DNA of 64,000 nucleotides, from positions 248,001 to 312,000 of IMG/VR virus record IMGVR_UViG_3300032288_004964; one strand, 5' to 3'. Made by a program: the position numbers and the translations under genes. Each line of letters starts with the position of its first letter. Position 1 is the stretch's first letter. Below the pieces are notes generated by a model. That model was given only the letters and a program-made list of their open reading frames with translations. It made no database searches and was not told the origin of the DNA. Positions 3,849 through 35,133 of this stretch are shown piece after piece.

Positions 3849-3928
3849 GTATAAGATTTATTTTATTATAGTGTATATATTATTTTATTAAATCCTTTTT
3901 ATTTTTTATCTTTGTAAAAAGAAATAAA

Positions 3929-5843: not shown

Positions 5844-6320
5844 TTAAGTTTTTATCAAATTAATTCTATTTCCACCAAAGTATTCTAATTTGTAACCAGG
5901 TATAGGATTTCTTTGTAAGTATCTTAAATAAACTTTTGTTCTTTGTGATATATATTCTTTTTCTTGTTCCTTTGGAAGACCAACCATTGTTATTTTTTTA
6001 ACCCAAGATTTTCTTTTTATAAAATCTTTTAATATACCACCAAATATAGTTTCTACCGTTCTATATAAATTAACATTTACAATTTTAGAAACTTCATAGT
6101 ATTCTTTTTCTGGATCATATACAAAATATGACAATTCATATTCTGTTCCTAAATTATTTGATTTAAGTATAGGTATATTTTTAAATTCAACTAGATACCA
6201 ATTATCAATAGTATCTTGAAATCTATATCTTACTTTTTTATCATTATCGGAAGCCAATTCCCAAGAATAAGATTCAACAGATTCTAATAATAAATCATAT
6301 ATAGAATTAATATATTTCAT
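5844..6320 (-). CDS. Hypothetical protein, putative late gene
   Basis: ORF track; TAATATATA motif immediately upstream. Confidence 0.7.
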   Translation of the reverse strand: MKYINSIYDLLLESVESYSWELASDNDKKVRYRFQDTIDNWYLVEFKNIPILKSNNLGTEYELSYFVYDPEKEYYEVSKIVNVNLYRTVETIFGGILKDFIKRKSWVKKITMVGLPKEQEKEYISQRTKVYLRYLQRNPIPGYKLEYFGGNRINLIKT

Positions 6321-6406
6321 AGTATTATATATTAAATTTGAAAATATTTAAATTATTTTTAAAAAATAACAAAACAAAGAATAAATATTTAATATATAGT
6401 ATATAT

Positions 6407-6502
6407 TGCGGGGTAGAGAAGTGGTCAACTCGCTAGGCTCATTTTAGACTATCTAATGAAGAAATAACCTAGAGATCACAGGTTCGAATCCTGTCCCCGC
6501 TA
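6407..6502 (+). tRNA. Initiator-type tRNA-Met(CAT) with 23-nt insertion in the anticodon loop
   Basis: TGCGGGG/CCCCGCT acceptor with 1:72 mismatch; CTAGG-CTCAT[23 nt]AA-CCTAG; GGTTCGAATCC. Confidence 0.8.
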
Positions 6503-6590
6503 CAAAAAGGAAGATTTGAAACCCAACAAAAAAAGATTATATAAACGGGGTTCTTTTGAAATTCATTTCTTCTGAAGAATTAAAAAAATA

Positions 6591-6623
6591 TTTGGTGATT
6601 AATAAAAATCACCTTATATTTGT
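6591..6623 (+). promoter_or_regulatory. Bacteroidota-type sigma promoter (-33 TTTG, -7 TATATTTG) driving leader 1 and tRNA cluster 1
   Basis: tttggtgattaataaaaatcaccttatatttgta. Confidence 0.75.
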
Positions 6624-6656: not shown

Positions 6657-6737
6657 ATGAACACAACTACTAACATATTGTCTTATTATTATGAGGAGAA
6701 AAACCCTTCTATCAGACAAGTATTGTTTGTGTTGTAA
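6657..6737 (+). CDS. Attenuator leader peptide 1 (Tyr/Glu sensor) MNTTTNILSYYYEEKNPSIRQVLFVL
   Basis: TAT TAT TAT GAG GAG run; followed by a terminator and Tyr/Glu tRNAs. Confidence 0.85.
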   Translation: MNTTTNILSYYYEEKNPSIRQVLFVL

Positions 6738-6758
6738 TTATTATTATAATATTAAATG

Positions 6759-6795
6759 AAACCCAGTCTGATTATCAGACTGGGTTTTTTGTTTT
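6759..6795 (+). terminator. Attenuator terminator 1
   Basis: aaacccagtctga-tta-tcagactgggttt plus U tract; ATCAGAC at 6711-6717 in the leader is complementary to the 5' arm. Confidence 0.85.
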
Positions 6796-6992: not shown

Positions 6993-7078
6993 GCTACGGT
7001 ATGCAAACCGGAATAAGCGACCAGACTTTCAATCTGGACATCGAAAGATGTGTGCGGGTTCGAGCCCCGTCCGTAGTA
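6993..7078 (+). tRNA. tRNA with TTC (Glu) anticodon and long variable arm
   Basis: ccaga-CTTTCAA-tctgg; acatc-gaaa-gatgt V-arm; A73. Confidence 0.8.
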
Positions 7079-7081
7079 CAA

Positions 7082-11690: not shown

Positions 11691-11729
11691 AATTGTATAT
11701 ATTATTTTTTTTACATATATTTGTAGACT

Positions 11730-14500: not shown

Positions 14501-14586
14501 TACTGTGTTGCCGTAGTGGCCGAACGGTCCAGACTGTTAATCTGGTGACGAATAGTCCAACGTAGGTTCGAATCCTACCACAGTAG
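14501..14586 (+). tRNA. tRNA-Asn(GTT) with long variable arm
   Basis: ccaga-CTGTTAA-tctgg; G73. Confidence 0.8.
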
Positions 14587-14591
14587 CAAAA

Positions 14592-15269: not shown

Positions 15270-15349
15270 GCTGATGTGGCACAGTGGCGACTGCACCAAC
15301 CTTGTAAGTTGGAACACAAACATCGGGGGTTCGAGTCCCTCCATCAGCT
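15270..15349 (+). tRNA. tRNA-Thr(TGT) with extended variable region
   Basis: ccaac-CTTGTAA-gttgg. Confidence 0.8.
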
Positions 15350-15356
15350 CAAAAAT

Positions 15357-15449: not shown

Positions 15450-15521
15450 TGCGATATAGCTTAATGGAAGAGCGGCTCCAGACATAGGGAGTTAGTCTTG
15501 GTTCGATTCCAGGTATCGCGA
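15450..15521 (+). tRNA. tRNA-Met-like with 8-nt anticodon loop (AGA-CAT-AG)
   Basis: gctcc-AGACATAG-ggagt; normal D and T arms. Confidence 0.6.
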
Positions 15522-15526
15522 CAAAT

Positions 15527-22044: not shown

Positions 22045-22091
22045 ACCCACTTTTGTGGGTTTTTTTATGATACATTTTTAATATATAGAAT

Positions 22092-25882: not shown

Positions 25883-25992
25883 ATTAATTATATAATATAG
25901 TATTTATTAGTTTAAAGTATATCATGATGATACATGAATTTGCTTTTATTAGTTAAATTTTTTTCTTATATTTGTAAATAATATATAATTTA

Positions 25993-30395: not shown

Positions 30396-31478
30396 ATGAA
30401 AATAAAAAAGTTTAATCAGTTTAATACATCTGAATGGATTGGTCCTCTTGAAATATTGGATATAAAAGATAATATTGTCTTTACTAACTTTGGTAATTTC
30501 TCTAATAAATCAGGAAATAAACTTACTATTGGTTATTCTTATATTTTAAGAGTTGTTGGTAATGAAATAATTGATACGGGAATGAGTTGTGTGGATTTAG
30601 TTGTTCTAGTTAAATCTACAAAAGGTTATAAAGTTCTTTCTATTAAAAGAGGTAGACCGCCATTTGTAGGTATGTGGGCTAATCCAGGTGGGAATATTGA
30701 TGAAGGTGAGAAACCTTTAGATGCTGCTGTTAGAGAATTAGAAGAAGAAACTGGATTGGTTATACCTGGTAAAAGTTTTAATTATGTTGGATCATTTGAT
30801 AAAGAGTTTAGAGATCCTCGTAATAAAAATTGTGTAAGTCACGCTTTTAGTATTGTTCTTGATGAACAACCTTCTGTTAAAGCAGGTGATGATGCTACAG
30901 AGTGTACTTGGAATGATGTAGATGAAAATGGTAATGTAAAAGTAGATATGGCTTTTGACCATTCTGAAATAATTAAAAAATCTGTAAATATGTTAAATTT
31001 AAAAAATGTTAAAGAACCATTTGTTATTGTCTTGGTTGGACCACCATTATCTGGTAAAACAACTTGGATTAAAAATAATTATCCAACAACTGAGGTGATT
31101 AGTCGTGATGAGATTGTTATGGAAGTTTATGGTTCTAAAAACTATACAGAGGCATTTAAAAATGTTGACCAAAAAGAAGTAGATAAAGTTTTACATGAAA
31201 GACTTGTTGATGCTAACTTGAAAAAGAAAAATGTTATTATTGACATGACTCATATGGCTTCTAAACGCAGAAAACATAATCTAAATTACTTTTCTGATGA
31301 TTATTACAAGATGGCTGTTATTTTCCCTATTCTTTCAGATGATGAATATGAAAGAAGAAATAAAAAAAGAATTGAAGAAGAGAATAAAGATCTTCCAATG
31401 AATATTGTAAAAAGTATGATTTCATCATATCAACCTATCAGTCCAGAGGAAGGCTTTGATAAAGTTATCTCAATTTAA
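30396..31478 (+). CDS. NUDIX hydrolase fused to a P-loop (polynucleotide-kinase-like) domain
   Basis: GGNIDEGE...AAVRELEEETG NUDIX box; GPPLSGKT Walker A followed by ISRD. Confidence 0.8.
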   Translation: MKIKKFNQFNTSEWIGPLEILDIKDNIVFTNFGNFSNKSGNKLTIGYSYILRVVGNEIIDTGMSCVDLVVLVKSTKGYKVLSIKRGRPPFVGMWANPGGNIDEGEKPLDAAVRELEEETGLVIPGKSFNYVGSFDKEFRDPRNKNCVSHAFSIVLDEQPSVKAGDDATECTWNDVDENGNVKVDMAFDHSEIIKKSVNMLNLKNVKEPFVIVLVGPPLSGKTTWIKNNYPTTEVISRDEIVMEVYGSKNYTEAFKNVDQKEVDKVLHERLVDANLKKKNVIIDMTHMASKRRKHNLNYFSDDYYKMAVIFPILSDDEYERRNKKRIEEENKDLPMNIVKSMISSYQPISPEEGFDKVISI

Positions 31479-32529: not shown

Positions 32530-32559
32530 TCTGGGTTTTTTATTTTAATATATACTCTT

Positions 32560-33610: not shown

Positions 33611-33695
33611 GAGGAAGTTCCAGAGTGGTCAAATGGGGCTGTGTAGTAACACGGCTGACTTTTAGTCTTCAGAGGTTCAAATCCTTTCTTTCTCA
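33611..33695 (+). tRNA. tRNA-Tyr-like with 8-nt anticodon loop
   Basis: gctgt-GTAGTAAC-acggc; long V-arm; A73. Confidence 0.6.
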
Positions 33696-33785
33696 CAAAA
33701 AATATTTTGAAAAACATTTGGTAGAATAAAAAAAAGTTTCTATCTTTGTAAAACAAAATTAAAAGGTATTATATAAAAAACATAT

Positions 33786-33861
33786 TGCGGGAGGGTGAAA
33801 CGGAAAATCATTCCAGGCTCATAACCTGACGAGATACTTGGTTCGACTCCAAGTCCCGCTA
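33786..33861 (+). tRNA. Initiator-type tRNA-Met(CAT)
   Basis: cagg-CTCATAA-cctg; 1:72 mismatch. Confidence 0.75.
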
Positions 33862-33895
33862 CTAAAAAAAGTTTTTATAAATTTTTTACAAAAGA

Positions 33896-33979: not shown

Positions 33980-34840
33980 TTACAGAAATAATGACTTCGG
34001 TCATTAAAGTAAGTAGGGCGGCTTATAGTCCATAAATAATCTCTGAAAGGAGGATAAAGTGATCACAAATGCTAAATGTGATTGCGGCTTGACCGAAAGG
34101 TTGAGCTCGGGTAAGCGAGTGGAATACCATTATTCCTGAGTAGCCGAGGGTAACACTGTAGGCGAAATGGTTTAGTGATTAGGCGATGTAGATCGTCTGA
34201 TTGACTTCGGAAGAAGAATAGGAATAATCCATAGGAATCTTTGCAAGAAGTGGTGACCCACCAGTTATCATCATTGCGAATTCCAACTTGAGAGGTATCT
34301 CAAAGTCGAAAGACAATTTAGTGTACAGGTGGTGCTGTTACTAAACACTAAACTGACTACCAAGTCGGTGACCTTGCTAAGGTGAGGTCTGGTGAAGATA
34401 TCTTAAAGAGTTGTGATGGAGGCATCACACGGAGTAGTCTAGTATTCTTGAGGCCAAAAGCTTTGGGAACTAAGAGATAACCACTACTTCGACAAAATCT
34501 ACAGCACTAAAATTTACTTTTTGACGTAAAAATTAAAACTTAAATCGAAAGTGTTATCTAGTTACTGATAGAAAGGTACCTACTTAGTTATGGGTTGTCC
34601 ATAGCCACATAAGTCCGAAAGACTGGTGTGATTTTACCGAAAAGCTTATAGGGGGTCGAATCCCGAACTAGCCTGCGAGGGTTGGATAAGTAGAGTAAGT
34701 AGAGAGTATTCAGTGACTCAAGGGGTGGTTAGTCTAACTAACCGGTACTGACAAGATACCATTCAAAAGATGGTGGATAGATTTGGGAATACATAATCCA
34801 AACAAAGACTTGTCATATTAAGATGTAATCTCAGTCTTTT
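33980..34840 (+). ncRNA. Large structured ncRNA, GOLLD-like
   Basis: ~850 nt with no ORF in the track, higher GC than flanks, many GNRA/UUCG-capped hairpins, flanked by tRNAs; family name is from size and context only. Confidence 0.6.
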
Positions 34841-34844
34841 ATTT

Positions 34845-34920
34845 GGTCAGTTCGTCTAGCGGCATTCAGGACGGATATCTATTCAGATATCAAACATTGG
34901 TTCGAATCCAATACTGACTA
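34845..34920 (+). tRNA. tRNA-Glu-like with 8-nt anticodon loop
   Basis: gatat-CTATTCAG-atatc; normal D and T arms. Confidence 0.6.
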
Positions 34921-34999
34921 CTAAGTTTTCGTAGTGGTTAACTTACTCCGAAAGGGGGGTCTGTCAATGACAGTGTGACTACCTCAAAGTCACACATAT

Positions 35000-35099
35000 G
35001 GCCCGTTAGTCTACAGGACTCGCAAGAGAATCAGATTTATCTGATTAGGACGGTCAACTTTTCGGTTGATAGATATTGGTTCGAATCCAATACGGGCTA
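35000..35099 (+). tRNA. tRNA-Glu-like with 8-nt anticodon loop and two hairpins in the D-loop
   Basis: gtcaa-CTTTTCGG-ttgat; nested in a 10-bp stem 34925/35124. Confidence 0.55.
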
Positions 35100-35133
35100 C
35101 AGAAATCACGGTCTTTTGACCGTCTACGAAAAC

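Follow-up and report, generated by a model that had tools for sequence, protein, structure and literature searches.

The initiator tRNA gene at positions 6407–6502 of the analyzed DNA (bases 248001–312000 of the IMG/VR virus record IMGVR_UViG_3300032288_004964; this whole stretch of 64,000 nucleotides is referred to as the window) is interrupted in its anticodon loop by 23 nucleotides. Judging from sequence comparison, this insert is on balance probably an orphan member of a family of optional inserts of 18–31 nt that are linked to an endonuclease at the DNA level and are excised at the RNA level by proteins that rejoin the tRNA. On the DNA level, comparison with related phages suggests that the insert travels with a gene for a free-standing GIY-YIG homing endonuclease adjoining the tRNA gene: By disrupting the homing site of this endonuclease, the insert would spare its carrier, in analogy to the 50-nt insert in the T4 MobA/gene 60 system. 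On the RNA level, proteins would cut out the insert and rejoin the two tRNA halves.

The virus record (385,333 bp; label G000) has an estimated completeness of 95%. Its nearest relatives with respect to the window are two genomes of 634 and 642 kb deposited as 'uncultured phage', which belong to a clade of huge phages that includes the Lak phages and for which Bacteroidetes are the predicted hosts (PMC7162821). Metagenome runs containing the stretch are mostly labeled as freshwater, aquatic, plankton or groundwater. With a G+C content of 28.5%, the window constitutes a translation island that harbors about 30 tRNA genes, a GOLLD RNA, GluRS, GlnRS, and a TilS-like PP-loop protein. The GOLLD RNA is full-length (34430–34837, plus strand; Rfam RF02032, 270 bits, E 6.8e-76) and is flanked by tRNA or tRNA-like genes at 33611–33862, 34845–34921 and 35000–35100. 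Several of the tRNA genes are peculiar in themselves: tRNA-Glu(TTC) at 6993–7079, tRNA-Asn(GTT) at 14501–14587 and tRNA-Thr(TGT) at 15270–15350 (all on the plus strand; 81–87 nt) carry long variable arms, which is unusual for these isotypes, and each has a twin of normal length nearby. ARAGORN moreover assigns eight-membered anticodon loops (acat, agta, attc) to the genes at 15450–15522, 33611–33696 and 34845–34921 (plus strand), which could be four-base anticodons or mispredictions.

The identity of the interrupted gene follows from two programs. The sequence matches the Rfam tRNA model end to end with 54.8 bits, with 27 bases replacing four loop positions, and ARAGORN, if introns are allowed, calls a tRNA-Met(CAT) with a 23-nt intron. 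This agrees with the original prediction, made from the letters of the window, of an initiator-type tRNA with a 23-nt insertion in the anticodon loop; likewise, removal of 23 nt does restore CTAGG-CTCATAA-CCTAG, the cut given at that time (6443–6465) being the 36/37 placement of the insert. The mature sequence contains U1.U72, A11:U24 (GAGA/ACTC), G30:C40, G31:C39, and A73, and the 1:72 mismatch is kept in all orthologues as either U.U or C.U. Three consecutive G:C pairs at 29–31:39–41 are not found, as 29:41 is A:U, a pair that is also typical of most uninterrupted orthologues. Despite this A:U pair, the gene is by its sequence a bacterial-type initiator tRNA-Met. Its 5′ half is exactly common to 39 IMG/VR phage contigs, all of which are uninterrupted, and the gene of L013 nearly matches the window gene in its spliced form. 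Because an identical insert-bearing stretch (6135–6586) is present in an independent plankton metagenome, the insert is real and not an assembly artefact. Another sample (run X5) contains a variant of the window gene that is one base longer; an insert-less form of the window strain was not seen among the DNA contigs compared.

The features of the locus are compiled in the table below. Upstream of the tRNA lies the motif TAATATATA, which occurs 16 times in the window versus 7.65 times expected, mostly 5–30 nt before gene starts (sites include 3874–3882 and 11696–11704 on the minus strand as well as 22079–22087, 25979–25987 and 32546–32554 on the plus strand). Due to this enrichment and placement, it is a plausible phage promoter element with very short leaders; a late-type motif upstream had been noted originally. 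The motif also precedes the orthologous tRNA in relatives. Downstream, the hairpin element at 6509–6573, which has no Rfam family, differs from its counterpart in LR756502.1 by one two-sided pair change. It is found in L001, L047, L048, and L055 and is missing in L045; since it also follows uninterrupted tRNAs, it is independent of the insert. For the same reason, and because the element folds on itself, we rejected a pairing of GAAGAAAT in the insert with ATTTCTTC in this element as well as a connection via the repeated TGAAGAA. The terminator at 6594–6623 likewise also follows uninterrupted tRNAs. Behind it follows a block at 6659–6788 (plus strand) that all relatives share in conserved form; it starts with ATGAACAC..ACTAACATA and includes a strong terminator at 6758–6788, and its possible readings are a micro-protein of about 30 amino acids (in relatives: MNT.TNI..YYYE...SVRRI.SMS) and a small RNA. 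A low-depth groundwater contig (run X4) joins position 6400 to 6609 with 31 other letters in between and may stem from a relative without this tRNA and its 3′ element.

Table. Features of the interrupted initiator tRNA locus and of associated genes in the window.
Feature	Position	Strand	Basis
Conserved neighbor gene, synteny anchor	5844–6320	−	40 homologues
Promoter-like motif TAATATATA, ending 8 nt before tRNA position 1	6390–6398	+	16 copies vs 7.65 expected
5′ exon, tRNA positions 1–34 (acceptor, D arm, 5′ anticodon half-stem, C32 U33 C34)	6407–6440	+	Rfam, ARAGORN
Intervening sequence, 23 nt, between C34 and A35 of the anticodon	6441–6463	+	ARAGORN; homologous inserts at same site
Hairpin within insert: TTAGA, loop CTA, TCTAA (6444–6448 with 6452–6456)	6444–6456	+	Fold
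3′ exon, tRNA positions 35–73 (A35 U36 A37 A38, 3′ anticodon half-stem, T arm, acceptor, A73)	6464–6502	+	Rfam, ARAGORN
Conserved hairpin element 3′ of tRNA (GGAAGA ... TCTTCT)	6509–6573	+	Conserved, covarying with L001
Intrinsic-terminator-like hairpin GGTGA..TCACC with T-rich tail, closes tRNA unit	6594–6623	+	Terminator scan; conserved in all relatives
NUDIX and P-loop polynucleotide-kinase-like protein	30396–31478	+	Pfam NUDIX 69 bits, AAA_33 68 bits; PHROG polynucleotide kinase E 1.3e-14
Second initiator-like tRNA(CAT), uninterrupted, U1.U72, same anticodon arm, unusual D arm	33786–33862	+	ARAGORN

For a comparison across phages, orthologous initiator tRNA genes were gathered via the neighbor protein encoded at 5844–6320, via the GIY-YIG endonuclease described below, and via a DNA pattern; a protein-pattern scan of IMG/VR for the neighbor gene gave no match, and several other pattern scans likewise came back empty. 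In the alignment with homologs, which had been proposed as a check, the insert recurs in 12 sequence variants of 18–31 nt, all of them placed at one site of the orthologous gene in related huge phages, namely in the window (23 nt), its X5 variant (24), L001 (= LR756502.1; 31), L052 (18), L055 (22), L061 (24), L063 (22), L065 (24), L069 (23), L073 (28), L205/L206 (23), and L207 (23). Uninterrupted orthologues are found in L002, L045, L047, L048, L054, L058, L066, L071/72, and L074. The inserts fall into two sequence types, one with an RTTTT.GA start and a GAAGAR end, to which the window belongs, and one with an AGTCA start (L055, L063). When 185,579 prokaryote genomes, one per species, were searched for the insert pattern, 15 matches came up, none of which is a tRNA. 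A mini-ORF in the insert (ATG AAG AAA TAA in the window, similar in L001) was dismissed, as L052, L061, L065, L055, and L063 have no ATG.

The variants also bear on the position of the junction. In the window gene alone, a cut at 34/35 (6441–6463), 35/36 (6442–6464) or 36/37 (6443–6465) gives an identical product. All variants but one share the arrangement CTC-insert-ATAA, L063 having TTAA instead, and a junction between C34 and A35 restores CAT in all variants but L063; in L001, L065, and L207 it is the only junction that does so, because a G follows CTC there. In L063, CAT is restored at 35/36 only, while 34/35 gives CTT, so that no single junction fits all variants. Taken as a sequence argument, the comparison with relatives favors 34/35 for the window gene.

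The link to an endonuclease is illustrated by a pair of close relatives, L052 and L054. Their neighbor proteins are identical, and the 18-nt insert of L052 is the only difference between the two sequences (otherwise 100% identity) from the first tRNA base to about 335 nt downstream, with 94–97% identity elsewhere. Upstream, the match breaks off directly at the tRNA; on this side, L052 carries two additional genes, one of which encodes the endonuclease. The aligned sequences thus characterize the insert as optional and its borders as exact. The L052 endonuclease comprises 185 amino acids and scores 29.4 bits for GIY-YIG, with NUMOD3 below its cut-off; the two ORFs that were scanned with Pfam reach 29.4 and 26.5 bits against a GIY-YIG cut-off of 22.6, and one of them, the L055 orthologue, also exceeds the cut-off for HTH_7. 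Orthologues with 55–64% identity adjoin the interrupted tRNA in L055 and L001, the L001 protein (L001:2460–3014) being a 'homing endonuclease' according to PHROGs, and a profile of 30 family members matches the I-TevI catalytic domain (structures 1mk0 and 1ln0) as well as T4 endonuclease II. The ORF beside the tRNA in relatives is hence classified as a predicted free-standing GIY-YIG homing endonuclease. The tRNA array of L052 holds two more nuclease genes, PD-(D/E)XK_5 and HNH_3 with NUMOD4 (1150–1449 and 2205–2654), and is apparently a hotspot for endonucleases of the homing type.

Together with the contexts of eight further lineages, L052, L055, and L001 make up 11 lineages with this endonuclease, and in all 11 its gene adjoins the initiator tRNA gene. 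In relatives it lies between the side of the neighbor gene and the tRNA; its start is located 75–110 nt upstream in divergent orientation in nine lineages and 261 nt away in one, and in L065 the gene abuts the 3′ end of the tRNA. The distribution at this fixed site is sporadic, with six syntenic loci lacking the gene, and no member of the family is located near any of the 39 other uninterrupted phage initiators. An insert is present in eight of the 11 endonuclease-bearing lineages and in none of the six syntenic endonuclease-free loci. The endonuclease occurs without an insert in L066, L071/72, and L074, the endonucleases of L071 and L074 forming one clade; conversely, the insert occurs without an endonuclease gene in the window, L205/L206, and L207. 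As no family member is found near the tRNA at 6407 in G000 either, the window phage has the insert and no endonuclease gene, which makes its insert an orphan. Restricted to loci that were found regardless of either trait, the association between insert and endonuclease gives a table of 3/1/0/6 (Fisher p = 0.033); over all lineages, where ascertainment is mixed and lineages are not independent, it is not significant (p = 0.17). We therefore regard the association as suggestive and the position of the endonuclease gene together with the L052/L054 pair as the firm points.

In the seven interrupted genes that were counted, pairing in the four cloverleaf helices amounts to 96–100%, and ten pairs show two-sided changes; all T stems and anticodon stems differ between these genes and yet stay complementary, and an intact cloverleaf is kept in all 12 variants. 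In the X5 variant, C6433A and G6472T convert C27:G43 into A:U, accompanied by one change in the D loop and the additional base in the loop of the insert hairpin. In the insert itself, the small hairpin that had been proposed (TTAGA/TCTAA) is present and is kept in relatives by a two-sided change to TTTGA/TCAAA. Two of the three differences between the inserts of the window and L069 affect the paired hairpin positions 6 and 14 (A:T to T:A), and L055 and L063 differ in one hairpin pair (C:G against G:C). In an attempt at one consensus structure for six type-A inserts, the hairpin register shifts between them. Readable in all variants is an architecture that leads from the anticodon stem via a 4-nt bulge (A35–A38) to a short helix, formed by U33–C34 of the exon (sometimes with C32) and the last G-A-R of the intron, and further via an internal loop to the hairpin. 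Both the intact, covarying tRNA and this common architecture favor a functional RNA and, by implication, excision of the insert. Since the tRNA body is kept intact, excision of the insert and rejoining of the halves by proteins is the most likely course.

The alternative that survives best, and that we nevertheless hold to be rather unlikely, is a disabled gene: The repair of an endonuclease break may have left the insert behind, which would have inactivated a dispensable initiator tRNA that is never spliced, the gene being young or refreshed by recombination. Several observations are in line with this. The phage has no gene for a known splicing nuclease and the insert no bulge-helix-bulge (BHB); the second, uninterrupted initiator-like tRNA at 33786–33862, which has orthologues behind the first initiator in L001, L048, and L055, makes the interrupted gene potentially dispensable; and the junction of L063 misfits the other variants. 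Moreover, the actual insert confers no greater stability on the extended anticodon arm than shuffled ones do (z −1.6 to +0.4, most cut-outs including extra 5′ bases), and the stretch is absent from all runs on record as RNA. Exon integrity could also in part be refreshed by recombination with intact alleles instead of being selected on this copy. Against a disabled gene stand the preservation of the cloverleaf across the variants with its many two-sided stem changes, including the compensatory 27:43 change that the window's own lineage shows after acquisition of the insert, and the retention of the CTC and ATAA flanks, L063 aside, despite strong divergence of the inserts in both length and sequence. 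Finally, orphan inserts persist in three lineages with intact tRNAs.

An unspliced tRNA-like RNA with a function of its own, for example a decoy that diverts a host anticodon nuclease or toxin directed at initiator tRNA, or a regulator whose anticodon is masked, appears improbable to us. The conservation of both the tRNA body and the insert hairpin would suit such a role, and so would the large set of tRNA repair and maturation genes, which suggests a conflict over tRNAs; VapC-type toxins cut initiator tRNA in the anticodon arm and would constitute a matching opponent. The wide variation of the insert (18–31 nt, two types) argues against it, as do near-identical phages without an insert and the link to the endonuclease gene, which would be left unexplained. 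The masked anticodon in particular, which the original prediction had based on a pairing of ATGA in the insert with TCAT, is confined to the window: The pairing does occur in the minimum-energy fold of the window gene and, like the mini-ORF, is not conserved in homologous inserts, because several relatives lack an ATG in the insert.

Preferring removal of the insert by proteins, we turn to the enzymes that might perform it. As had been foreseen, the insert cannot self-splice, because 18–31 nt cannot hold a ribozyme core, which amounts to about 200 nt or more in group I introns, and the window gene has no Rfam intron match. Neither a BHB motif nor a group I core nor a hammerhead-like core fits the insert. 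Among the three options initially offered (protein-spliced intron, masked anticodon, intron remnant), the protein-spliced intron is best supported: Cleavage and ligation are likely if the insert is removed at all, while no known splicing nuclease is encoded. A search of the phage record for RNA ligase and endonuclease genes was successful for the former. It revealed a T4 Rnl1-type RNA ligase (G000 C1:330569–331963; PF09511, 67.8 bits; phrog_562, E 1.7e-54) next to a small ligase-like nucleotidyltransferase; EndA (PF01974) and RtcB (PF01139) are absent from the 95% complete record, and family searches of it found no RNase III, Thg1 or PNK3P. By its domains, the product of the gene at 30396–31478 is a candidate RNA end-healing enzyme. 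In relatives, one or two RNA-ligase genes (PF09414) are located within a few kb of the tRNA gene or array. Relatives also have Thg1-like, HisRS-like, and AlaRS-fragment genes near the tRNA array (L047 185–1009; L045, L047, L048, L049, L050), so that, as far as gene content tells, the array is a dense neighborhood of tRNA repair and maturation.

The proposed route starts with two cuts beside the short helix, which a phage or host nuclease would introduce, and ends with the sealing of the loop by a repair ligase; candidates for the joining step are the Rnl1-type ligase and the PNK-like kinase of the phage. A precedent for such resealing is T4, in which an anticodon loop cut by PrrC is healed by Pnkp and sealed by Rnl1. 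In principle, the Rnl1-type ligase and the PNK-like kinase of the window phage could reseal a broken anticodon loop in the same way. The T4 reaction differs in that one nick is rejoined and nothing is removed, whereas the phage insert requires two cuts 18–31 nt apart. That huge phages possess a protein-dependent tRNA splicing of their own, by which a homing mini-intron is excised and the loop is resealed by T4-type Rnl1/PNK, is put forward tentatively, as possible rather than probable.

Two further origins of the insert deserve little credence. In cyanobacteria, the anticodon loop of tRNA-fMet harbors a group I intron with the endonuclease I-Ssp6803I (PMC11622646), and free-standing endonucleases can target intron insertion sites, including collaborative homing with an ORF-less intron (PMC3984707). 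The phage locus resembles these cases in that the initiator anticodon loop serves as a putative homing site and the endonuclease is encoded outside the intron, and the cyanobacterial example could be taken to support the view that the insert is the remnant of such a group I intron. The cyanobacterial introns are ribozymes of at least 200 nt, in contrast to phage inserts of 18–31 nt; a longer intron at the site is found in no relative examined, which removes the basis for the originally considered intron remnant, and no Rfam intron match exists. Furthermore, the 5′ exon must end in C in L001, L065, and L207, where group I splicing would need a U. Splicing would be impossible for a remnant, and yet the genes are intact, so that we judge this origin to be very improbable. 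Still less credible is a tRNA intron of the archaeal and eukaryal type, cut by an EndA-family endonuclease at a BHB, which shares with the insert the small size, the location in or near the anticodon loop, and removal by cleavage and ligation (here only proposed), and from which the insert departs in its site (34/35, not 37/38), its helix of 2–3 bp with a 4-nt bulge as read from the sequences, the lack of EndA and RtcB in the phage, and the Bacteroidetes predicted as hosts of the relatives of the phage (PMC7162821). The tRNA introns of archaea and eukaryotes have a 3-4-3 BHB, are cut by the nuclease EndA, and are located mostly at 37/38. All three characteristics are missing from the phage insert.

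ARAGORN also calls 'introns' at other places. One of 265 nt in L001 consists of two tRNA genes read as one, and those called at G000 245608–245738 and at 35000–35100 of the window are different, larger tRNA-like oddities. At G000 C1:245608–245738 and L002:9884–10007, acceptor, D, and T arms are intact, and 50–60 extra bases replace the anticodon and variable region; judged by sequence, these genes differ in kind from the interrupted initiator. Elsewhere in the record, a tRNA with the anticodon CTA (amber suppressor type; G000 C1:370132–370204) is located about 500 nt from an ORF of 245 amino acids (370707–371405), which matches GIY-YIG weakly and is 35–37% identical in its C-terminal domain to the initiator-linked endonuclease family. 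This ORF may encode another endonuclease beside a tRNA gene.

The closest parallel to the proposed DNA-level behavior is provided by phage T4. According to the account of MobA in a preprint (10.1101/2022.08.31.505936, citing Bonocora et al. 2011), a 50-nt insert in gene 60 protects its carrier and moves with the nuclease gene, and lineages without the nuclease exist. In terms of that account, both systems combine a short insert that is not self-splicing in a conserved gene with a free-standing homing endonuclease gene beside it; lineages with remnants and no endonuclease are known there, and the window corresponds to them as an insert without endonuclease. As expected for such a cassette, L052 and L054 have insert and endonuclease jointly present or absent with exact borders. 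An adjacent endonuclease gene is not found in the window and is found in eight related insert-bearing lineages. Protection of the carrier is described for T4, whereas it is a prediction by analogy here. As far as the account goes, the systems further differ in that gene 60 is a protein gene in which the ribosome skips the insert and the nuclease is of the HNH type, while here a tRNA, handling at the RNA level, and a GIY-YIG enzyme would be involved. A second parallel is SegB, a free-standing GIY-YIG endonuclease encoded in the T4 tRNA cluster, which cuts tRNA genes of relatives and thereby favors inheritance of its own region (PMC2330249). Both are free-standing GIY-YIG endonuclease genes among phage tRNA genes. 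The T-loop motif that SegB recognizes is common to many tRNA genes, and a protective insert is not part of its description, whereas here the endonuclease gene always flanks one particular tRNA gene.

Inserts in megaphage tRNA genes have been reported before: For Lak megaphages, Devoto et al. describe 'enigmatic introns' in Phe, Gly, Thr, and Tyr tRNA genes that are optional between genomes, and suggest that large phages may commonly have them (10.1101/356790). As described there, these introns share with the inserts discussed here the occurrence in huge phages of the same broad clade, their optional presence in tRNA genes, and their conservation where present. Compared at the level of this description, they differ in that some are tRNA-like in length, and no initiator tRNA, fixed 34/35 site or endonuclease link is described for them. 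A literature search brought up neither an interrupted initiator tRNA of this kind nor a fixed 34/35 site nor a link to a homing endonuclease. While megaphage tRNA introns are thus already known, the endonuclease link to tRNA inserts appears to be new, and the window contributes an orphan from this context.

To our knowledge, tRNA-gene introns of bacteria and their viruses are thought to be self-splicing only, and tRNA introns that proteins splice are characteristic of archaea and eukaryotes. Small mobile introns incapable of self-splicing are not known from bacteria or their viruses. The interrupted initiator gene thus points either to a new splicing route in phage-infected bacteria or to selfish DNA that has long been tolerated in a disabled gene. 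The link to an endonuclease provides the 'enigmatic' tRNA introns of megaphages with a concrete hypothesis on their origin. If the preferred reading of a homing insert removed by proteins is true, it would join T4 gene 60 as the second natural case in which a short insert secures immunity to a nuclease at the cost of a special expression trick, and, should the phages indeed splice it by a pathway of their own, it would constitute the first non-self-splicing tRNA intron system of the bacterial world, an RNA-level counterpart of the gene 60 bypass. It would also suggest a second role for the Rnl1/PNK repair enzymes of phages.
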